DNA of 64,000 nt from Saccostrea cucullata (Eukaryota), in contig NW_026928013.1 of assembly GCF_032062105.1 (NCBI RefSeq), positions 1-64,000 on the forward strand, read 5' to 3'. Below the pieces are notes generated by a model that had not been told where the DNA came from, did no database searches, and saw only the letters and a program-made list of their open reading frames with translations. The translations under genes and the position numbers were made by a program. Every line of letters starts with the position of its first letter. Position 1 is the stretch's first letter. Shown piece after piece: positions 2,232-63,714 of the stretch.

Positions 2232-5200
2232 TTATCCAGGTTTGGTATGAGAAACTGGAGAAGATTGCTCCTGCAAATCATCTGGTTTACTTTTGCTGTA
2301 TGCAATAGGCAACACTGCATTAGGATTGACATAATCCGTTAGACCACTCATGTTGAAGCCGCTGGCCATGGCTCCATTGCTGTAGAAGTGAAACAGCATC
2401 TGGCTGTCCATGTAGACACTCTCTCGCTCCATCTGCTGTTTGTTGGGGGTGGTGGGGGTGTAGTAAGGAGGGGCGATGTATCCGTCATAAGCACCATACA
2501 CACGACAGGGGGGATCGTACTCACCATACAGTAGATGAGGAGAGAGCTGGTGATAGGGGTATCCAGAATAGGGGGTATGGTCTGGATTAAAAAAAATATT
2601 ATACCTTTAATTGTTGTGCAATAAATTTGCTAAAATTGCAAAAAATAGCATGAAATAAAGTTATCAAATTTCTTTTGAATAATAAAGTAACTCTAGCATT
2701 ACTTATTTTATCTCCTAATATAACCTTGTAAAGATCGTTTCAGATGAAAATAAAGATGAATTCAAAATTAAATCACTTATACTCTGTTATTGCTGTCAAT
2801 GGTTTTAGATATCATCCAGACACTTAAGCGTTATATACAGAAAGAATGACAACTAAACATATAAACTCAAATTTATAATATCCCCTCTTTGAACAAATGC
2901 AGGGGACAAAAATATTAAAATTCTGAAATTTTAATATCTATATCTTTTTTCTATTCTCATTAAAGTATGGTGGCTCAAAAATGTAATTTCATTATGGGAC
3001 ATTTAATGCCTTGATAGTTAAAGGAAACACAGACTTTTTAGTACTAACCTAGCCCAGAGAAGTTATTTTCTTTCTTTGTGACTTTCAGGGCTTCAATAGA
3101 GGGCAGCACAGTCTGAGGTTTCTGGACATGACTGTATTCCTCTGTTCCTGACTGGATTCGGATCCTTTTCACTGGGAACTGGCTTCCATTTCCATCCACC
3201 AAATCTGAGGGGAAAATACAAATTCAACTTATTCAAAGAAGAGCAATGCGTAAAATAGATCCTTGTTAAACTGTAAAAGAAAAACTTACCTCTTTTGAAA
3301 CCTGTCTGTTTAGACTCTTCATTGCTCAATTGTCTACAAAATTAAAATTAAAAAAATCTATCATATGGGGTGCCATTTTGGTATTTACTGCCAAAAAGTG
3401 ATATCATCTATTCGAATAAGTGATATCACCTATTCAGATTTTGAAAAGGTGATATCACCTATTCGAATAGGTGATATCACCTACATGAATAAGTGATATC
3501 ACCTATTCGAAAATGTGATATCACTTATTCGAATAGGTGATATCACTAATTTGAATAGGTGATATCACCATATCATTTTGAATAGACGATATCACTTATT
3601 TGAATAGGTGATATCACCTATTCAAATTATTTTTGAAATAACAACAGCTCCCAAGAATATAGGTCCCTAAATCTTATTTACTTTCACTTTCGTTTTACAA
3701 CTCATCATTCTAGGAGACAATAGATTACAGTTTTGCTTTTAATTTTAATCAACCCCAATAGAAATTGTAGTTTGTTTTGCTCACAAATTAATTTATTTCA
3801 CTTATCTATCATGTACACTTTAAGAAAAATTGGAAAAACGCATGAAAACTGGGTAGTCCGAATTTTCTTGGTTCCAGTGGTAATCTATACATTATAGGGA
3901 GCATTCATTATTTATTTGTTGTAAGAAATTCAAATAGGTGATATCACCTATTCGAATTGGTGATTTCACTAATTCAAATTGAAAAGGTGATATCACCTAT
4001 TCAGCACAAATAAATGATATCACTTATTCGAATAGGTGATATCACCTATTCGAATAAGTGATATCACCTTTTTGAATAGGTGATGTCACCTATTGAAAAT
4101 GAATAGGTGATATCACCAATTCGAATAGGTGATATCACTTTTTGCCAGTAAATACCAAAACGGCACCTCATAGTATAATCATCTTCAATTTTGTATTTAT
4201 ATTTGTTCTAAATTATATACATGTAATAAACACCACAGTATATCATCTAGTCTTCAGACTTACTCTGAGTCTATAGATGACGTCACTATGTTGGACTCCC
4301 CTGGGGACATTGGTACTCTGGTAGATTTTCCTCCTTTTTCACATCTCTTCCCATTTCTACCTATTCCCTCAATTAAAGGACCTTTTGTCATCAGTTCAGC
4401 TATCTATCAACAAAACAAATAATGTATCGTTACTTATGTACTTGTATCATCATACAAATTCATCTACATGTACCATTTGTACCATACAATCATGTGATAA
4501 GCTGTAGAAATGAAAGCAACATTTTGGCATCTTTTCTTTTAAAAAAGTACTTAATAAGCAATGTAGAAGTACCTGATTTTGAAATTCCTGGGGCAGTGAT
4601 TCATTAACAAGTTTCAGATACTCTACACACATTTCCAGTATGGAAGCCATGTCTGTTTTGCGGCCCCTGACGTAAGGTAACAAAACTCTCAACTGGTCAC
4701 AGCTGTCTTTAATTCGTTCTCTACATAGAGAATTGGAATAGAATTATAATTCCTCAGTGATACATTTCCAATGTTCATTCTTAAGAATTTCAGTGGAAAT
4801 AATATAGAACCATTTCTTATCAATATTATTTATTTTACCTTCTAACTTTCTCCTTTGTTGTGTGGTCAATAGCACTGCTATTCCTAGGTGGTTTGTTTTG
4901 TCTTAGTTTGGGTACCATGGCTTTAAGTTGAGAAAATGACGGCAGTTGCACTGAGCACTTGTTTAAAGTCTGGTTAAATGCAGGGGATTCTATACCACTG
5001 TCCAAAGATATCCTGCCAAATGTAAAACAAAAAGTGCAAAAGTCGTCTGCTTTGTGCACTGTTGAAATAAACTATACACGTATAGTCAATTTCATCTTTG
5101 AAATTGATAACTTTAGAAATAAAACTGCATCGTGCATGCATATTTCAAATGCATCTTTATTTATCACTGGTATTTCTTACGCCACACTAGATCCGTCCCC

Positions 5201-8200
5201 ACTTTCGGAGGCAGGTGTGGATGGTGTTGTCGGAGTCGCAGGGGTTGATGGCGTTGCCGGTTCTGAAAATTCTGGAGGTTCACTCTCCTGTGTATCTTTC
5301 GTGTCCACTAAAAATCGTTTTTGAAAATTATTTGATTTTCTTTTTCACTTTTTTAAAAGATTTCTTTCCGTTTATAATTTTTTTAAAGGGTGGAGTGGAA
5401 GGGGGTGATATGTGCGCCATGTTATTATTTATGGATTCTTCATTCTGTGTAAAATTGTTTTATAATTTTTAATTTGACTTCATACGTAAAATCTGCTGTC
5501 AATTGTTTAGAGGACACACCTGTAGTGATTTGTGTTGACGTCCAGTTCGTGTATTTCTCACGTACGTCTTTGTTGGTAACAGGATGGAGAATTATTTCAT
5601 CGATTCCATGTAATCTCAAATCAGCTAAAATCATCAAAAAAAGTAGTTTCGTCTACAGAATATTGCTATAATAAAGATTAGGCAAAGACTAGATGACACA
5701 AAGCTGACGTTTTCTGAGAGAGACCTACCAACAGCTGAGCCATCAGATACGCCGATGATGACGGTTCCTCTGTTGCAACTACTTGCATACCTAATAAAGA
5801 ACATATTACTGTTCACTTAAAATTATATATACATGTTGTATTTTTTCAAAACCATTTTAACCAAGTCTACAAACTTTCTCCAAGAAACATTTTCATACCG
5901 AAAAATGCATCTTAATGTCACAGATCTGTAGCTCGCTGGTTCGAAAAAAATTTGGATAGACGACCATATATATTTTTTTTCTGTGAGCTACAGTTCTGCA
6001 GCTTCTTTATTTTTTATTACATTTTATTCATTTAAATCCCCTGAATATTACATGAATGAGAGTCGAAAAAAGCTTTAGGAATACACATCATACCAGACAA
6101 CGGTCTAAAGTAAGTACCAAGCAAAAAACTGCTTTGTGGATTTCAAAATGAAAAGAGCTAGGAAACGAACTAGCTATTCATTGAGCCCATCACAGCATAT
6201 CAAAATTTCTGAATGGAAGTATTATTTCATCACAACAAGTCCCCCCCCCCTTTTTTTTGTTGCTATAATCAGGAAATCTAAAGTTCTGGTGAAACGACAG
6301 GACATCCAAAAACTCGGATTAGGGTATGGTCACGGGAATCGTTTAATTTCGGTAAAGAAGTTGTATGAACTGCTTTCTTCGAGGCGCAGAACAAATCAGA
6401 ACAGCACATATTACTCCAAGCAAGATACTAGTATACGAAATAATTGTAAATAATAGTTTGTGACATTCACTAACGTGTGTCTGTCAGGGAAATGGGCGAA
6501 AACCAAAGTACCGCATTTTACTGTACGGAAAAAAGCATTTAGAACAGGCACATTGTATCGGGGGGAGGGGGGGGTGTTGCAAAGAGGTTTTTTTACTATT
6601 GAAAATGTTTATTGAAAGGCTGGTTGCTCAAGCCCATCCCCTACCCCAACCCAACCCCTCACATAGTTTTTTTGTGGCAATATAGTCAATATTTAGGATG
6701 ACTTGGTATTCTGCATTTTGTTATGAAAGAAGTTGGAACCTATCCCCCACCCCCTCCCACAGGAAATAGGACTTTCGAGTTTGGACAACCCCTTCTTGTT
6801 TTTTGTTTGTTCAAGCTTCCCCCTCCCTACACGCACACGGGCTTTGAAAAAAACAATACTACATACCTTTTGAAATAATTTTGTAACTCAATTACGTTAA
6901 TGATACAAAAGATATTCCACTGTGTGTATCTTTAAAAAGCATCCAATTTTAGTGTTCCGTTGTCCATGCTTCAAGTTTACATCACATGATAAGCAGTGTA
7001 ACAAAGACTTTACAGATTAAAAGAATTACGTATACTTTAAATGTGGAAATTTCACCCCAAGAAAACCACTGTCAACCGAGGCGCAGCCGGGGTTGACATG
7101 GTTTTCGAGGGGTGAAAATTTTCAATGTTACACTCAACTACATGCAATATTTATTATATTATATTGAATGTTTTATATAAATACATATAACAGAGAACCG
7201 TGCGCGCATAAATTCTGCGCAGTCGCTATTTTTTGGAATATCACCCGTCGTCAAGCAATGTTGACTGTTGCTAAGCAGGAGGGCGTGGCTTCATTATTCA
7301 GCGGGTAATAGTGTTTTTTAACAAATGTTTCTCGACGAATCAGATTCAAGTAATTTACATGAAAGTATAATATACTTATGTTTAATATTACTCTGCATCG
7401 TTTATGGTTCATAGGAAAACGATTTTTAAGAAAACTCCCATCAGTCATATACTATTGCATTATAAGCCCTATATTCCTACCGGATGGAGGTGGTGAGACT
7501 AAGGACTCCCTGGGCCACAGGCATGTCAATGAGCACCCAGATCAGGAGGTAACACTGCACGTTACAGGCCTCGAACGCCTCCTCCAGACGACATACCCTC
7601 ACCTCGTGGGCCACCGTCTGGTTAGAGATCATGCCCTTCAGGTTTTCTGCCTGCGGTCCCTCTCCAACCACTAGTGACATCAAGCCCATTCCAGGGGCCT
7701 GAAATGAAATAAAGTGTATTGACTGGAAAAACTAGTGACCCAGATTCCGTCCACTTGCCAACAGCAACGAAACTCGCCTTGAGACGAACACCTGCACTGT
7801 ATTTTTATGGAGGGCTGATCGTACCATTAAGCTTAGCAAGACTAGGACCACTGCTTGTCTTAAAGCAAATAAGAAAGGACAGATTATCAATGGGAGATAT
7901 ACAACTTACTGTTAGACAAAAGTCCAGGTGGACTTGAATCTTTTTGATGGTCACCTCGACACCCTAATTAAAATTATGAATACATAGCTTTTCATTCATA
8001 CATGCACCTACCAAATCTGAGAGTTCTTCGATAGGGAAAGTTGCGTCGTCTGGTGGGTTATCATTATATATGGAGATGTCATCGAAGCCGAGGAAGGCTT
8101 CAGGACCAATGTTCAGGTCGATCTCGTCACCATTATTATCGCCGCTTACATCGTCAAGGGACGACGATGACACAATTTCATCTGTTTCTTTGTCTTTCTC

Positions 8201-8299
8201 CTTCTCAGAACTCGAAACATCCAGTTTATTTTCTGTTTTGGGGGTTTTGGACCGTCCTTTACGCTCGTTTTTTCGCTTGCCTTTTCCCACAGGTTTCAT
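2232..8299 (-). CDS. SOHLH2: SOHLH2-like spermatogenesis/oogenesis bHLH transcription factor with N-terminal pseudo-receiver domain (~621 aa, 12 exons)
   Basis: Exons 8299-8012, 7963-7910, 7698-7481, 5790-5729, 5624-5520, 5307-5181, 5012-4839, 4720-4573, 4403-4264, 3333-3290, 3204-3049, 2581-2232. All GT-AG, phase-compatible, 1866 nt total. The bHLH HTTKEKVRR-ERIKDSCDQLRVLLPYVRGRKTDMASILEMCVEYLK closely matches the SOHLH2 bHLH as I recall it (HSSKEKLRRERIKYCCEQLRTLLPYVKGRKND). Confidence 0.85.
3364..4172. mobile_element. MITE/foldback element with ~40-bp TIRs and subterminal arrays of a 22-bp palindrome
   Basis: Left end tatggggtgccattttggtatttactgccaaaaagtgatatc; right end reverse-complements to tatgaggtgccgttttggtatttactggcaaaaagtgatatc. 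About 10 copies of GAATAGGTGATATCACCTATTC-like units per arm (3398-3625, 3932-4140). The terminal TA may be the target-site duplication. Lies in SOHLH2-like intron 9. Confidence 0.85.
7044..7125. repeat. Long imperfect inverted repeat (hairpin), probably part of a non-autonomous transposon
   Basis: tttcacccc..gaaaacca.tgtcaacc pairs with ggttgacatggttttc..ggggtgaaa around a short GC-rich loop. Intronic. Confidence 0.7.
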
Positions 8300-10384
8300 T
8301 TTTTTACTCTCAGCTTTGTCCTAATACCGTCATGGCTATTCAATATCGACCAAGGTCAGCTATTTGTATTTTATACAAAAACAACTCCCGTTGGAGCCTC
8401 ATTGTTCAGTGATTGGGCAGCGCTTGACACTCGTGTCCTGAATGTATTCGAAATGTTATTCCGCTGTGTGACACCCGACATTTAACATTATAACGGTGTC
8501 ACACGTGTGATACGATAAGCTTTATACTACTGGAATTTATACAGGGCCTGTTGAAAGTGAAAAGCTCATATCATACGAGTTAAAAAGAAAGTTACCATAA
8601 TATTTTCTCTTTTTCATTATCATTCGAATATAAAGATCTCACAAAGATATATATATTCATTAATGAGGTTCCTACAAACATTTGAGGAAGTGGAATGAGT
8701 AATCAGCGGTCGATCATATTCCTTATTTCGCTGCTTCCTCCAGAAAATAAAGACTTTGAACAACTGAAATGCCAATCCAATGATTTCATCCTATATATTT
8801 ATAAATCTTTATTGTTAGTCGTTAATTACTTAGAATGGTTACATGCAGACATATGCAAACTACTCATTGGACTTTAAAAGCGTACCATAATCTTTGAACT
8901 ACTAGAGTTCAGTGTTGATGCCACAGGCAGTCAGACAATTTCTACATTTACTGCAAGATGTGAGTAGTTTTGGGCACAGAAATGTTTACCACTGCTTATA
9001 CATGTAACGTGAAAAACTTCTTTTGTTGGAGGTATGGGGACGACTATATAATATAGGACTCACCCTGTATTTAGGTTTCTTTGGTAGAAGTTTTCGTTTC
9101 ATCTTGATGATGAATGGGTAGCTGACCAGCAGTCTCTGTACAACTTTCAAAATCTCCTCCCCGGGCCTAAAGTCTGAGCTGAAATAGAGAGGCGGATCAA
9201 ACAATATGTCAAAACGTTTGATTAAAAGAAAGAATAAATATACATGTACATGAGATCTTCATTTGTAATTTTTTTCACCATCATGCTTACATCTTTGAAT
9301 AACTGCTTCAGGTCATAAGCGTATTATATAATTTCATTTTTTTAAATGAAAATAATTCTTGATATTTTCAACAATTTACATAATTTGTTTTGCCCTCTTA
9401 CTTTTTTAAAGATACCTGTATATTAATGATTCTGTTACAAAAATTTCAAATACCCTCAGAATGCGAGCAGTTATCTAGATATGATGATGCTAAAATAAGT
9501 GAAAAAAAATACTTCGTAAGTACACATCAAGAAAATCCTTTCAGTTTTGTTGTATCTTCATTATTACAAGTTCTTACTTATTCCTTCATTCATCTTTGTA
9601 AAGTCACAGTCTTTCTGGTAGATGTATAAAACTCCACTAACCTCGGTTTCTTACGCCTTTGCACGGGTAATGCGAAATCCATCGTGCGTACTTCTGTCAA
9701 AATGCCGTTCAGAAAGAAAACGAAGGGCGCTATTCATTTACAACATCATAAATAAGAAGTTTTCTTTCAAAAATGTTTCATTGACTGAAATTTGTCTAAA
9801 CTCTCTGTGATCTTGGTTCACGTGAAAACATGTCCAGGCATGCCGATCGCGATTCAGAGTATGGGAATTCCTTGGAACACCCCTGTTCTATTTATAGACG
9901 GAGAACTTTTCATTTGCACGAAACTCGTGTACGCCCTATAGGTAAGTATTTTGTCTTTAATTATTGAACTTCGTTTTTCAAATGAGAACATGTCACTAAA
10001 CAATTTTCACAACCTTGGTATCAAACTTACAAGACACTAATTCGATTTAACACTTTATTCTCAAATTACAGTTTAATTTGCATAAAATTCGATATCGTAA
10101 GATACGTGTATAGATAAATAATTAAATATTTTTAAATTTTAATCTGTAAACTCTCTTAAAAAATCAAGGAAAAATACATAAATTTAGCATTGTCTTATTT
10201 GAAAAGTACTCCACATTAAGCTAATACTGAAAAAGAAAAGAGAAGTTTAACAAACATCTATCGATACTTGGAATAAAATGTTTTTTATTCGACATACGAG
10301 TCACCAATTCAAAAACTTAATGTTTGCGTAAGTAGAAGGAAATATTTCTATCAGAATTTTGTGAGTAGTTTTTTGTTATCCAGA

Positions 10385-13300
10385 CTACCCTGGAAGTTTG
10401 ACCGGGGAAGCAAACACGGGTGTAACGCTGGCTAGCGGGGATACCGGGGGTGAGGTCCACGAGTGACTGAGATTCCTCCGCACGGACGGGGACCCCGGGG
10501 CACTTCTGGTCAGCCGGAGGGGGGTCTTGATTGGAGTGGAGGTCCTGTTCATACTGCTTCTGAAAGTAAGTTTATAAAATTTGAAACATCACTGACGAAC
10601 AGTTTGAATCGAAATAGCTTAGGAGAAATTCAATTTATAGACGTTTACAAATGTTGTAGTCTACTCCTTTTATGCCTCCATAATCGAAGATAGATGGATA
10701 AATCATAGTTTTTGTCCTGTCCATCCGTCTGTCTGTCTTTGCTAAAAAACTTTAAACATTGTCCATGATTTTTAATTGGTTGGAGTTATTGTGTATTTCC
10801 TGTGATAAGACTTGTTTTGGATACTAGTACCTTCATATTTGACTTCTTGTGGAAGTCTTGACCTAGGCTTAGAATTTGACCCACTTTTGAAAAACACGTT
10901 TAGAGTATCGGCTTACTGACGGGGTTATGGACAGGTTTCCTGATGTGAAAGTGACTCACCTGTTATTAACGTTTAGGGCTGGCTTACTGATGGGGCTTAT
11001 GATACTAGGTTTACTGACGTGACAGTGTGTTACCTGTTACTGAAGTTTAGGGCTGACTTACTGATTGGGCTTAGGATAGGTTTACTGACGGGGCTATGTA
11101 CAGGTTTACTGATGTGACAGTGACTCACCTGTTACTAACGTTTAGGGCTGGCTTACTGATGGGGCTTAGGATAGGTTTACTGACGTGACAGTGTGTTACC
11201 TGTTACTGAAGTTTAGGGCTGGCTTACTGATTGGGCTTAGGATAGGTTTACTGACGGGGCTATTGACAGGTTTACTGACGTGACAGTGTCTTACCTGTTA
11301 CTAACATTTAGGACTGGCTTACTGATTGGACTTAGGATAGGTTTACTGACGGGGCTATGGACAGGTTTACTGACGTGACAGTGTGTTACCTGTTACTAAC
11401 ATTTAGGACTGGCTTACTGATTGGACTTAGGATAGGTTTACTGACGGGGCTATGGACAAGTTTACTGACTTGACGGTGACTTACCTGTTACTGACGTTTA
11501 GGGCTGGCTTACGGGTGGGGCTATGGACAGGTTTACTGACTTGACGGTGACTTACCTGTTACTGACGTTTAGGGCTGGCTTACGGGTGGGGCTATGGACA
11601 GGTTTACTGACTTGACGGTGACTTACCTGTTACTGACGTTTAGGGCTGGCTTACGGGTGGGGCTATGGACAGGTTTACTGACTTGACGGTGACTTACCTG
11701 TTACTGACGTTTAGGGCTGGCTTACTGATTGGGCTATGGACAGGTTTACTGACGTGACGGTGACTTACCTGTTACTGACGTTTAGGGCTGGCTTACTGAT
11801 TGGGCTATGGACAGGTTTACTGACGGGGCTATGACTAGAGGCGTTGTAGATTTCCTCCTCACTTGAGTCCGAGCTACTTATGGAGTAATTCTTTGTTTCG
11901 TCCGATCTTTACGCGCAAAAACAAAATAAAAGTACAAAAAAATTGATTGCACTGTCAAATCTTTTGTTATAGAAATAACATGTTTATACGTCACGTATAT
12001 TGGTAATGACTGAACAACTTACAACACTATATACTTTTTGCCGGTTTTGGGGTCGTGCATTCGAGAAAATGTAGAATAACGTTCTTTGTAACTCTCTGGT
12101 GGACAGTTAAAATTCAAGTCGAGGGGTCTATGACTGCCATCATTTTTTCTGGAAAAGAAAATAGTTCTGCATAAATAAATAGTTACATACATCCTATACA
12201 TGTATGTTTTTAGATTATGAAAGCCTTATGCCATATAAAAAAATGTACTGATCCAGTGTCCTATCACTGAATATATCCGCCTCTCAGATAGAGCAATAGA
12301 CTTTGTATGTACGTGTAAAAGTATTTTGTGTCGAAAAGTTATTTCTTGTAAAATTGTATAATGCACAAACACCACGATTGTTCAGAGACAAAAAAAGAAG
12401 AAAGAAAGAAAAAAGAAGCTAAATGCAGTACATCTACTAGTATGTCTGTGATATCAATGTACGTACATCTATGTCTGTGATATCAATGCACGTACATCTA
12501 TGTCTGTGATATCAATGCACGTACATCTATGTCTGTGATATCAATGCACGTACATCTATGTCTGTGATATCAATGCACGTACGTCTATGTCTGTGATATC
12601 AATGCACGTACTTCTATGTCTGTGATATCAATGCACGTACATCTATGTCTGTGATATCAATGCACGTACATCTATGTCTGTGATATCAATGCACGTACGT
12701 CTATGTCTGTGATATCAATGCACGTACGTCTATGTCTGTGATATCAATGCACGTACATCTATGTCTGTGATATCAATGCACGTACATCTATGTCTGTGAT
12801 ATCAATGCACGTACATCTATGTCTGTGATATCAATGCACGTACATCTATGTCTGTGATATCAAGGGATTTGCATGTATGAAAAAAAATAAATGTATTGTT
12901 ATAAATGAATACTAACCGTCTGAAGGTACGATACAACACTGCGATGAAGTAACACACGGCAAAAACGAAAACAGCGACCCCACATCCCACCACAAGTCCC
13001 ACCCAAAACGCCTGGTCTGAAACAAAGTTTGATAAAACTTGTATGAATTACAAAAATACTTAAAATGTGTTCCGAAAATCATACGAATTCATTTTATTTT
13101 GACTGTATTAATAAAATATTTATTTATTTGTCTGCCAAATTTCATGATTTTACTTACATGTAAATGTAACATGAAATCTGTCTTCAAGAATGTTTTGAAT
13201 TACATCTAAATTACACATAATACTATTAATAACGTAACCTTGAACAAAGAATTATATTCATATTTAAAATATTAATAAGTAGTTTTGCTCAAAACATCCA

Positions 13301-52620: not shown

Positions 52621-53848
52621 TTGGCATTTTCGTCTATAAGTAAAATGAATCGCTGCTTTAATCTCATCTTTTTTCATTTTTTTTTTTTGAATGTATTTTT
52701 TAAATCGTATTTATTTGTTGCGAGAAATCATGCTTCTGTTGAGGTTGGAACATCCTCTTTTACATACATTTTGTACTCTTAGACACATTTCGTACATTTG
52801 TTGAATAAGGCCCACTTAATCATTCTGAGTTAGCAAGAATTATAAAAAGAAATTAATAACCTATATCCGCCTTTCTGTTATCGTCAGATCTATGTCTTTT
52901 ACTCCCCCTAGTCTTCTCTTTGAACAAAGTACAAAACTCTTTTGTGAACTCATTATTTGTATTGTAATATTAAGTGGGGATATCACTAGTGTGCCTCCTT
53001 CTTTAAGTTTCTTTCTATATAAAAAAGGGGCGTACATCGCCCTTCGAAAATGGAAATCTTAACCGTGTGTTTCAATTTGACGAGAAAGGTTTTACAAAAG
53101 CTACAGCGAAGTTTTATTTAATTTTTTAATTCGTTTTAAGTTTCTGTAAATAATGGACGCATTAGAAATGTGGTATCGATTGGAATGTCAATACTAAAAG
53201 ATAGACGAACGTAATACTCCAAAAACAGATGAAAGACCGGTCACTGAACATATCTGTTTGTCTTCAAACACAAGATTACTTTATAATAAAAGAAGGAAAA
53301 TCCCCAGAATCGGAATTAAATCATGTACAGTTTTCATAAACTGACTCGGACAGGGGGTCTCTATTTCATGAAACTCGATATGTGGAGTGCATTCCTCGAT
53401 TAGTGCTCATATTTCACACTTCAGATTTACTTGTACAAAAATTGGAAAATCAAATTTGGCTTGCTGTCTTTAAAAAAAAACCTAAAAACTCCTCTCCCCA
53501 GTAATGCCCAAATACTTATAGATCTAGTTAGCAAATGCTCTTTTTGTTTGTTTGTTTGTTTGAATGTTTTATGGGCTTTCTTTCAATTAGATATAGATGA
53601 AAAATTAGAATACTATATCAATAGCATATCAAAATATGGACCATAATTAAAATACCAGCAACGCTGAAACTATTCATGACGCCATGAAGTTTCCCCCCAA
53701 ACTTCTCGAGCAGCATATTTGACATCTTAAACTACAACGTCACAATCGATAGGACGTCGTCGTTTACACAGAAACTGATGACGTCAATCGATTGTCTTGA
53801 AACTACATGTTATGGAACCTTTAGCAACAACAAGTAAATGTTTACGAT

Positions 53849-55108
53849 ATGAGCATCGAACCTGAACTTAAAAAACGCAAAATGGAGCCACATATTGGAG
53901 GAGATAACGGGACTGTCCAAAATGATTCTTCGAAATCTGTTCACAATTTGGCATCTCAATCAGCGAGTGGCGATTTTGGAGCGGACGATTTGCACCAGTA
54001 TGTAATGGCATTACCAGGAGAGGAGGGCGAGTCAAACCCTGCCAACTACAAGATCATTCGTCAGGGGTGTGCCCTGGGGGACGAGTGGGTCCAAACATAC
54101 CCTCCGCCACTTAGCTCGTATCCTGCTCGAAGCATCAGAACTGGAAACAGTTTCTATGATAGTTTTGTTCATAATATTACAAAGTTAGCAGGTTTTCGAC
54201 CCCTGAGAACATTAGCTAAAGGAAGATCAGGAGCGATTATATTAGCTCAAGACCTACACAAGGTGAACCATTATAAAGAGAGCGAGTATATCCCAGTGGT
54301 GCTGAAACTGAACTCCTCCAAACCGCGACGGAAAACCAAAATCACCCTCAAAACAGACATGGATGAGGAAATGAGAATTTTCAAAGAGTTAAATCATTGT
54401 AACATTGTCTCTTGGATTAGCAACATAAGCTGTCATGGTCGAATCGGAATCGTTATGGAATTTTGTGAAAATGGGAATTTGGAACAGATACTGCGAATAC
54501 ACGATGCACGTTTTTTAACAGAACCCGTATGTAGGAGATATTTCAGAAATATCTTTGACGCAGTAGAGTATATTCACCTACAAAATATTGCCCACAGAGA
54601 CATCTGCACGCAAAACGTCTTCTTAACTTCTCAAAATACTCTAAAGTTAGGAGATTTTGGACATGCTGTGTATTTCTTTACAGGAGATCAGTTGCTAAAG
54701 GACGAGTGCGGAACCATTGGGTTTCAAGCCCCAGAAATCGTCAACGAGGAAGCATACAATCCTAAATATGCTGACATTTGGTCATTAGGCTGTACCCTGT
54801 ACCGTATGTCTACCGGTCGGCTTCCTTTGGGAGTAATCCCTAACCAAATCAAGGAGCGTGCATCCAAAGAAATCCAGTTTCCAGAGAAGCGTGTTTTGGA
54901 TATTTCGCAACCTCTGAGAGAGATCGTCCGTGGCGCCCTCGCCTTCAATCCTGGTCTACGCTTTACTTTGAATCGGATCAAACATTGCGATTGGATAAAG
55001 GATTCCTGTAGTAAAGTCCAGATAGGGAACTTTCACATAATTCGACAACCTCGGAAGATCCGAGAAGGGGAGGTGGAACAAGCGCTCAAGAAGCGTTATG
55101 AAATTTAA
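53849..55108 (+). CDS. Intronless testis-specific serine/threonine kinase (TSSK)-like CAMK-group kinase, 419 aa
   Basis: VVLK lysine, HRDICTQN, GDFG, CGT..FQAPE, YNPKYADIWSLG. The YxPK..D.WSLG segment and single-exon structure are TSSK-like. AATAAA at ~55185. Confidence 0.8.
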   Translation: MSIEPELKKRKMEPHIGGDNGTVQNDSSKSVHNLASQSASGDFGADDLHQYVMALPGEEGESNPANYKIIRQGCALGDEWVQTYPPPLSSYPARSIRTGNSFYDSFVHNITKLAGFRPLRTLAKGRSGAIILAQDLHKVNHYKESEYIPVVLKLNSSKPRRKTKITLKTDMDEEMRIFKELNHCNIVSWISNISCHGRIGIVMEFCENGNLEQILRIHDARFLTEPVCRRYFRNIFDAVEYIHLQNIAHRDICTQNVFLTSQNTLKLGDFGHAVYFFTGDQLLKDECGTIGFQAPEIVNEEAYNPKYADIWSLGCTLYRMSTGRLPLGVIPNQIKERASKEIQFPEKRVLDISQPLREIVRGALAFNPGLRFTLNRIKHCDWIKDSCSKVQIGNFHIIRQPRKIREGEVEQALKKRYEI

Positions 55109-61916: not shown

Positions 61917-63701
61917 ATGGTTTCTTTGACGGAGAAGGTGGTCCTGAAACGTTACATGACCCTCCCTCAGCCCGAGGACAGGGTGATGTGTGAGTACATC
62001 TGGATAGACGGCACGGGGGAGGGGATCCGCTCCAAGTGTAAGACTATGGACTTCGAACCAAAACACGCCAAAGGTAAAAATTGATGTTTTTAACACGAAA
62101 CGTACTCACTAAAAATTTCATCATTTCAACCACAGTCAAACACAAAATGTAAAATGTGACTGTAGCTCTATTGGTTTGTTTTTAACCGGTATAATAAAGA
62201 AAAGAAAAGTAGCAGTTGGGACTTAAAACTTTACAAAAGCAATGAATAGAATAATGATCCTTGATTAAGTGAGGCAAGATTGCAATAAGACTACAGCTGT
62301 AGGTGTAGCTTTTAATAAAATTTTACTGAATTTTCAATTTAAATTTCTATGGAAACATAAATCATCAAAATCAAAAACACAAAACTGTTAATTATGTATC
62401 TCAGTGTAGTCTGCTTGCATTCCAGATTATATTATAATCAGACTCAAACTGTATTTGGAGTAGCATTTTAAAAGTATTTCACAGATATTACTATTTTTAG
62501 TAACCAAGACAACATCATTAATCAAAAATTAAAAACCGATACACAGAATTATGTATCTTAGTGTAGTCTACTTGTGTGCCAAGTTATATTGAAATCAGAC
62601 CAAAACTGTAGGAGGAGTAGCGGATTTGGAGGGGGTATAGTTACATTTTGAATGATTTTCAAAAAAATTCTATTTTTAGTAACAACGGCGACACCGTTCA
62701 TCGAAATCAAAAACCGATATACAGAATTATGTATCTTAGTGTAGTCTACTTGTGTGCCAAGTTATATTGAAAATTGATCTCAAATCAGACCAAAACTGTA
62801 GTAGGAGTAGCATTTTGAATGAATTAAAAAAAAAATCTATTTTTAGTAACAACGGCAAGACCGTTCATTGAAATCAAAAACCGATATACAGAATTATGTA
62901 TCTAAAAGTAGTTTACTTGTGTGCCAAGTTATACTGAAATCAGACCAAAACTGTAGGAGGAGTAGCATTTTGAAAAATTGTTTACAGACAGACAGACAGA
63001 CAGCTAGACAGACGGACGGACGCCGGACGCATAACTATCGCATAAGCTCATCTGGTCTCTGACCAGTATAGCTAAAAATTAAGACTACGCCCCTTGAATG
63101 ACCGAAATATCGATAAATGGATATGAAAACTGACTCATTTTCTTTTAAATACTTATTGAAATTTTTTTTTTAATCAGAGTGCCCGGTTTGGAATTACGAT
63201 GGTTCCAGTACGTTTCAGGCCGAGGGCTCCAATTCGGACATGTACCTCCACCCCGTGGCGCTGTACAATGATCCCTTCCGACTTGGCAAAAACAAACTAG
63301 TGTTGTGTGAGGTGTACAAATACAACAACAAACCAGCGGGTAAATCAATGCAAACAATACTGTTTATATATATTTCTTGTTTATATATTTCTCACGTACT
63401 TTCAGGAAAACAAGCACTTGAGAGTTCACAGCTGGTCAGCATTACAAACCCTTGTGATCTCTGACCACGTGAAATAAAGCAAACAACTTGATGAACCAGA
63501 ACTGCTCATTGAATGAAAAAAAGTTTGAATCAATAAATTATTATTTATTTTCAGAAAGCAACAACCGTAAATCTTGTAATGAGGTTTGTGAAAAGGTCAA
63601 AGAGGATCAGCCTTGGTTCGGGATAGAGCAGGAATATACACTTCTGGACATCGACAAGTATCCGTTCGGATGGCCGAAAAACGGATTTCCCGGGCCACAG
63701 G
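61917..63701 (+). CDS. GLUL: Glutamine synthetase type II, first three coding exons (gene continues beyond the window)
   Basis: Exons 61917-62073 ([15 protein letters not shown]), 63178-63339 ([25 protein letters not shown]...DPFR...LVLCEV), 63555-63701 ([11 protein letters not shown]...GWP..GFPGPQG). Phase-1 GT-AG introns. Confidence 0.97.
62270..63078 (+). mobile_element. Helentron/HINE-like element with ~4 tandem 160-180-bp units in GS intron 1
   Basis: Repeated aaaaaccgatatacagaattatgtatcttagtgtagtctacttgtgtgccaagttatattgaaatcagaccaaaactgta. GACA/GACG microsatellite at 62987-63022. Terminal palindrome ctggtctctgaccag followed by agctaaaaa. Confidence 0.8.
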
Positions 63702-63714
63702 GTTAGTTAATGCT

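Follow-up and report, generated by a model that had tools for sequence, protein, structure and literature searches.

Which protein module lies ahead of the DNA-binding domain in a germline transcription factor of oysters, and where did it come from? The question is raised by a gene on the minus strand of a 64 000-nucleotide (nt) stretch of Saccostrea cucullata DNA, positions 1 to 64,000 of contig NW_026928013.1 in assembly GCF_032062105.1 (hereafter the window). The gene, LOC134276161, is annotated 'uncharacterised' in RefSeq. It represents the SOHLH2-like germline basic helix–loop–helix (bHLH) family in the oyster, and profile and fold comparisons show that the domain encoded upstream of its bHLH exons descends from the receiver domain of two-component systems.

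The domain is carried by three exons, 7698-7481 (218 nt), 5790-5729 (62 nt) and 5624-5520 (105 nt), which have polypyrimidine-AG acceptors and GT donors and whose phases chain 0-2-1-1 without a stop. An initial annotation, made from the DNA alone, had spliced these exons and joined them to the bHLH exons. The RefSeq models have identical junctions: every residue of XP_062614413/4/5 (P0198, P0157 and P0199) maps onto the window, and the three isoforms, which differ in their first exons alone, all continue past the domain into the bHLH exons 5012-4839 and 4720-4573. The C. gigas orthologue is found as a single intron-free open reading frame (ORF) of 609 amino acids (aa) on a Logan contig (L007, SRR5451707). 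When a profile of the family was compared with all stop-free pieces of the window, the three exons obtained E-values of 1e-21, 4e-5 and 4e-9; they are not chance matches, since the next best piece scored 0.53. Genome searches indicate a single copy of the gene in S. cucullata. Two details of the initial annotation had to be corrected: the domain was placed at the very start of the protein, but it follows 13-96 residues supplied by alternative first exons, and the reading frame was begun at a Met, but the domain exon opens six residues further upstream. The coding exons, placed by protein mapping, are as follows.

9642..9682, minus strand: alternative first coding exon of isoform X2 (P0157 residues 1-14), conserved in C. 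gigas X2
9064..9178, minus strand: second exon of X2, within which X3 starts (at 9102)
8012..8299, minus strand: first coding exon of X1, 96 aa, basic and then with an acidic tail (P0198 residues 1-96)
7481..7698, minus strand: receiver-like exon a, beta1 to alpha3, with a degenerate Asp site (Leu); the invariant Arg is split by a phase-2 intron
5729..5790, minus strand: receiver-like exon b, alpha3-beta4 loop and beta4 with the retained Ser
5520..5624, minus strand: receiver-like exon c, short alpha4, beta5, His-Pro replacing Lys-Pro, and alpha5 with a conserved Trp at its end
5181..5307, minus strand: linker exon rich in Pro, Thr and Ser
4839..5012, minus strand: linker and bHLH basic region
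4573..4720, minus strand: helix–loop–helix exon of the SOHLH family (Pfam HLH, E 9e-7; closest relatives SOHLH)
4264..4403, minus strand: C-terminal region exon
3290..3333, minus strand: C-terminal region exon
3049..3204, minus strand: C-terminal region exon
2232..2581, minus strand: last coding exon, Tyr/Pro-rich, with the stop

Arrays of a 22-nt near-palindromic unit lie in introns of this gene at 3396-3627 and 3928-4138, and are possibly the arms of an element resembling miniature inverted-repeat transposable elements.

The exons of the window were searched one by one, and database proteins provided the whole domains used for folds and profiles. The N-terminal domain, of about 120 residues, has a (beta-alpha)5 fold that can be superposed on receivers, and the family profile reaches an E-value of 1.3e-11 to 3c97 among PDB sequences; the 18 entries with E < 0.001 are all two-component proteins. 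The five beta–alpha units and the CheY-like fold proposed in the initial annotation are thereby upheld. The Pfam family PF00072 (Response_reg) had been suggested as a route to the domain, but no member of the SOHLH family reaches its cut-off, and single-exon searches of Pfam, PDB sequences and the ESM Atlas gave no match for the domain; it is revealed by profiles and folds only, single exons being insufficient. A generic Rossmann or flavodoxin look-alike is ruled out by the sequence-level E-values and by fold lists filled with receivers, in which the odd entries 8oyp and 9ckx presumably reflect receiver domains used as crystallisation tags.

By both profile and fold, the closest relatives are the C-terminal receivers of hybrid histidine kinases (GacS/BarA, fungal Sln1 and HK3, plant AHK5), with which the oyster domain shares Ile-Arg ending alpha3, Gly-x-Asp before beta5 and Pro after beta5. 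Unlike them, it is fused to a bHLH, its phospho-accepting Asp and its Lys are replaced, and no accompanying kinase or Hpt domain was found in the genome. With the active site anchored on the profile alignments (3c97, GacS) and numbered on P0157, the Asp site at the end of beta3 is Leu108, the acidic pair of beta1 is Glu-Gly, Ser140, closing beta4, stands where 3c97 and GacS have Thr, and the Lys site is His159, followed by the invariant Pro160. All three substitutions and retentions read from the DNA in the initial annotation (Asp to Leu, Ser kept, Lys to His before a retained Pro) are thus reproduced.

Across the family the canonical residues form a mosaic, and no protein has the full set. 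Asp occupies its canonical site only in Nematostella, Actinia and Rhopilema (anemones and jellyfish), with Glu in corals; Ser or Thr ends beta4 in many molluscs and the anemone; both beta1 acids are present in some gastropods; and Lys-Pro after beta5 is seen only in the bowfin protein. To the question in the initial annotation whether any animals keep Asp and Lys, the answer is that each residue survives singly and that the pair occurs together nowhere. In most therian SOHLH2 proteins the Asp site is Lys and the Lys site is Glu, a charge swap which, judged from the residues, could lock the pocket. Two residues are invariant: the Arg ending alpha3 and the Pro after beta5. HisKA, Hpt and PF00072 gave no match in the S. 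cucullata genome by an exon-wise search, which split genes can escape; the missing HisKA and Hpt matches agree with the lack of typical histidine kinases in animals. Nematostella has no histidine kinase, and Capsaspora has 11 and Monosiga one (PMC6324907), so that the domain may plausibly have been captured from a pre-animal hybrid kinase.

The other half of the protein identifies its family. With the bHLH exon as query, a phmmer search of 1.84 billion proteins yielded SOHLH-family matches, which bear SOHLH2-like names in oyster, mussel, scallop, gastropod, octopus, chiton, cnidarian and vertebrate. The oyster bHLH groups with SOHLH2 in best matches and in a tree of modest deep support, and the intron phases of the gene are common to bowfin and marsupial SOHLH2. 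SOHLH1 and SOHLH2 constitute a germline bHLH family (PMC5381572, PMC6529535), and mammalian SOHLH2 forms heterodimers with SOHLH1 (PMC4086951). The primers labelled Cg-Sohlh1 by Qian et al., whose target is gonad-restricted in C. gigas by reverse-transcription PCR (PMC6529535), match the transcript of the C. gigas orthologue of our gene, which we therefore take to be gonad-restricted. The bHLH of this orthologue groups with vertebrate SOHLH2, and its 11 exons agree with the Sohlh2 of the same paper; the Sohlh1 and Sohlh2 labels of the oyster genes look inconsistent and may be swapped in part of that work.

How old is the fusion? The oyster gene shares five intron positions with those of Nematostella, Rhopilema, bowfin and Tasmanian devil: a phase-0 intron ahead of beta1, a phase-2 intron within the invariant Arg, phase-1 introns where alpha4 begins and behind alpha5, and a phase-2 intron in the basic region of the bHLH. 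The receiver–bHLH fusion therefore predates the split of cnidarians and bilaterians, and contamination or recent gene transfer is ruled out by the spliceosomal introns common to these five lineages. The cnidarian and mollusc domain profiles align with a probability of 98.8. The surmise that vertebrate SOHLH2 shares the N-terminal module holds for the domain and introns of non-human vertebrates. The module had been called an old bilaterian relic; it is older still, as cnidarians have it, some with the Asp, and it is not decaying, since between oyster genera the domain exons have a dN (non-synonymous divergence) of about 0.16 and a dS (synonymous divergence) of about 1.7, a saturated and rough value. 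Across both molluscs and vertebrates, only the bHLH is a more conserved block than the domain, and marsupial domains are 97-98% identical.

Some lineages have dispensed with it. The receiver-like domain is absent from vertebrate SOHLH1 and was not found in clam models of Imparidentia; the SOHLH2-like genes of Mactra (L016) and Dreissena (L010) lack the receiver-like exons. The whole interval up to the upstream gene is free of the three exons in Mactra, where the absence is a real loss, and the first exon of the Dreissena gene has its phase-1 junction at the position that follows the domain. This suggests that the exons were lost in Imparidentia. An apparent loss in Potamilus was refuted: the gene model is truncated, and three unannotated receiver-like exons (L011:2052-5300) sit upstream of its annotated start, at a distance of 5-8 kb. 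An extra search of short proteins added vertebrate fragments only. Three mammalian SOHLH2 models (P0036, P0045 and P0050) contain the first receiver-like exon only, cut at the conserved phase-2 intron, and may be exon-skipping isoforms or model errors. CCDC169 (DUF4600; L008:1-1165) lies upstream of SOHLH2 in bowfin and on another contig in oyster (G000:C6150).

What does such a domain do without its pathway? The reading that we favour, and hold to be somewhat more probable than not, is a phosphorylation-independent pseudo-receiver acting as a folded interaction module. A receiver was fused to a bHLH before cnidarians and bilaterians split, and its phosphorelay residues were lost piecemeal, presumably as animals lost their histidine kinases. 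The module would then self-associate, or bind a partner or its own bHLH half, and in germ cells such contacts might tune the factor's choice of dimer, its localisation or its activity. Mouse SOHLH2 is reported to be cytoplasmic until SOHLH1 appears, which would suit a module that restrains the factor or depends on a partner. Retention of the domain from sea anemones to mammals despite its lost chemistry suggests that a control module of a fertility gene has gone unnoticed. Of five SOHLH2 variants described from human patients with ovarian failure, two are called deleterious (PMC10002966). Three of the five, including both deleterious ones, fall in the domain, at residues that are identical in four marsupial proteins: E79 belongs to alpha3, E105 follows the beta4 Ser/Thr site by two residues, and L120 belongs to beta5. 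The placement is indirect, by residue number on the marsupial proteins and with the human letters unused.

Several observations weigh against an interaction module. The literature searched contains no experiment on the domain. The invariant Arg and Pro are also found in ordinary hybrid-kinase receivers, so these residues may be structural, and their conservation may serve no more than folding. Molluscs and vertebrates have very different surface residues, so that a single partner surface is not apparent, and the domain is dispensable in vertebrate SOHLH1, Mactra and Dreissena.

The alternatives appear weaker than the interaction module. A passive folded spacer, or an element of stability or solubility without regulatory input, would accommodate the structural look of the invariant residues and the repeated loss of the domain (clams, SOHLH1); it is improbable in view of marsupial conservation near the bHLH level, surface loops included, of retention in four very distant lineages, and of the patient variants at exposed Glu positions. 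Some bacterial pseudo-receivers bind small molecules: that of Caulobacter ShkA binds cyclic di-GMP, and Streptomyces JadR1 binds an antibiotic. The degenerate pocket might likewise bind a nucleotide, metabolite or lipid and so switch the factor. ShkA is among the structural matches of the domain, and position T+2 of the beta4-alpha4 loop, a site of a patient variant, is a conserved Glu in therians. We nevertheless consider this unlikely, since within molluscs the Asp site is Leu, Met, Lys, Tyr, Val, Ser, His, Gln or Arg, and pocket residues that vary so freely are incompatible with a shared ligand.

The input could also be a eukaryotic modification, with Ser or Thr phosphorylated in the domain or the linker, or the redox state of two Cys residues. 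Cys88 and Cys97 are present in most cnidarian and mollusc rows and the adjoining linker is rich in Thr-Pro repeats, but vertebrates lack both Cys, and the idea has little probability. Least credible is a cnidarian domain still switched by phosphorylation of its Asp, with acetyl phosphate or another donor. Nematostella, Actinia and Rhopilema have the canonical Asp, and Nematostella keeps the Thr; against this, neither the Lys nor the beta1 acidic pair is present in the Asp-bearing proteins, the coral residue at the site is Glu, Nematostella is without a histidine kinase (PMC6324907), and the proposal is inapplicable to the oyster protein. A bolder reading makes SOHLH2 a disguised animal response regulator, in which a pre-animal phosphorelay receiver would still switch conformation when a ligand or partner engages the former active site (marked by the therian Asp-to-Lys, Lys-to-Glu swap) and would be broken by the human ovarian-failure variants; this we regard as doubtful.

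Receivers and pseudo-receivers on transcription factors are already known in plants and fungi. Plant TOC1/PRR proteins (pseudo-receiver and CCT), type-B ARRs and fungal Skn7 join, like the oyster gene, a receiver-type domain to a eukaryotic DNA-binding domain, and the receiver domain of PRRs is non-phosphorylatable and mediates protein contacts. The likeness to plant PRRs drawn in the initial annotation holds for the architecture and fails for the output domain and the degeneracy: the DNA-binding domain is another one, the site is far more degenerate (below Pfam detection), and the kingdom is one without phosphorelays. Nor is this the first receiver domain in animals, as the N-terminal REC domain of PDE8 (Pfam PF23198), of uncertain role, was described before (PMC12346295, PMC9585345). 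Its exon is present in the same oyster genome (G000:C18371:671721-671927, L003; PF23198 E 5e-28), with a receiver-like pattern and Asp kept at the end of the third strand. PDE8 REC is attached to PAS and phosphodiesterase domains, the SOHLH domain to a bHLH. The SOHLH profile has no detectable similarity to the oyster PDE8 exon, a weak single-exon test, and the two receivers are probably separate captures. The SOHLH family itself was known, and PMC5381572, PMC6529535 and Pfam give it a bHLH only, with the N-terminal domain undescribed. No link between SOHLH2 and a receiver domain appears in the literature searched; a CheY-like label for SOHLH2 may already exist in automatic structure classifications.

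Elsewhere in the window, a tandem array at 10910-11825 (71-95-nt units, up to 97% alike, with a minus-strand donor-like motif) adjoins an exon-like ORF at 11908-11768, and a 29-nt minisatellite at 12441-12863 has 14.6 copies that are 98% alike. The stop-free stretch at 24631-25344 on the minus strand (238 aa, without a match in Pfam) has the look of a genuine coding region in a single exon. The plus strand carries LIM and homeodomain exons of a LIM-homeobox gene, Lhx2/9-like by eye (34764-46302), an intronless protein kinase ORF of 427 aa (53825-55105) and glutamine synthetase exons (63174-63703).

The prevailing view is that animals gave up two-component signalling, with PDE8 as the usual exception, and SOHLH2 adds a second receiver-derived domain, in a factor needed for egg and sperm development in mammals and kept since the ancestor of cnidarians and bilaterians. 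The unexplained N-terminal third of SOHLH2 gains a fold and testable surfaces, the patient variants a structural reading, and the non-interchangeability of SOHLH1 and SOHLH2 a possible reason. With Asp kept in anemones, lost in bilaterians and the whole domain gone in some clams, the family constitutes a natural series for how a signalling domain outlives its pathway.
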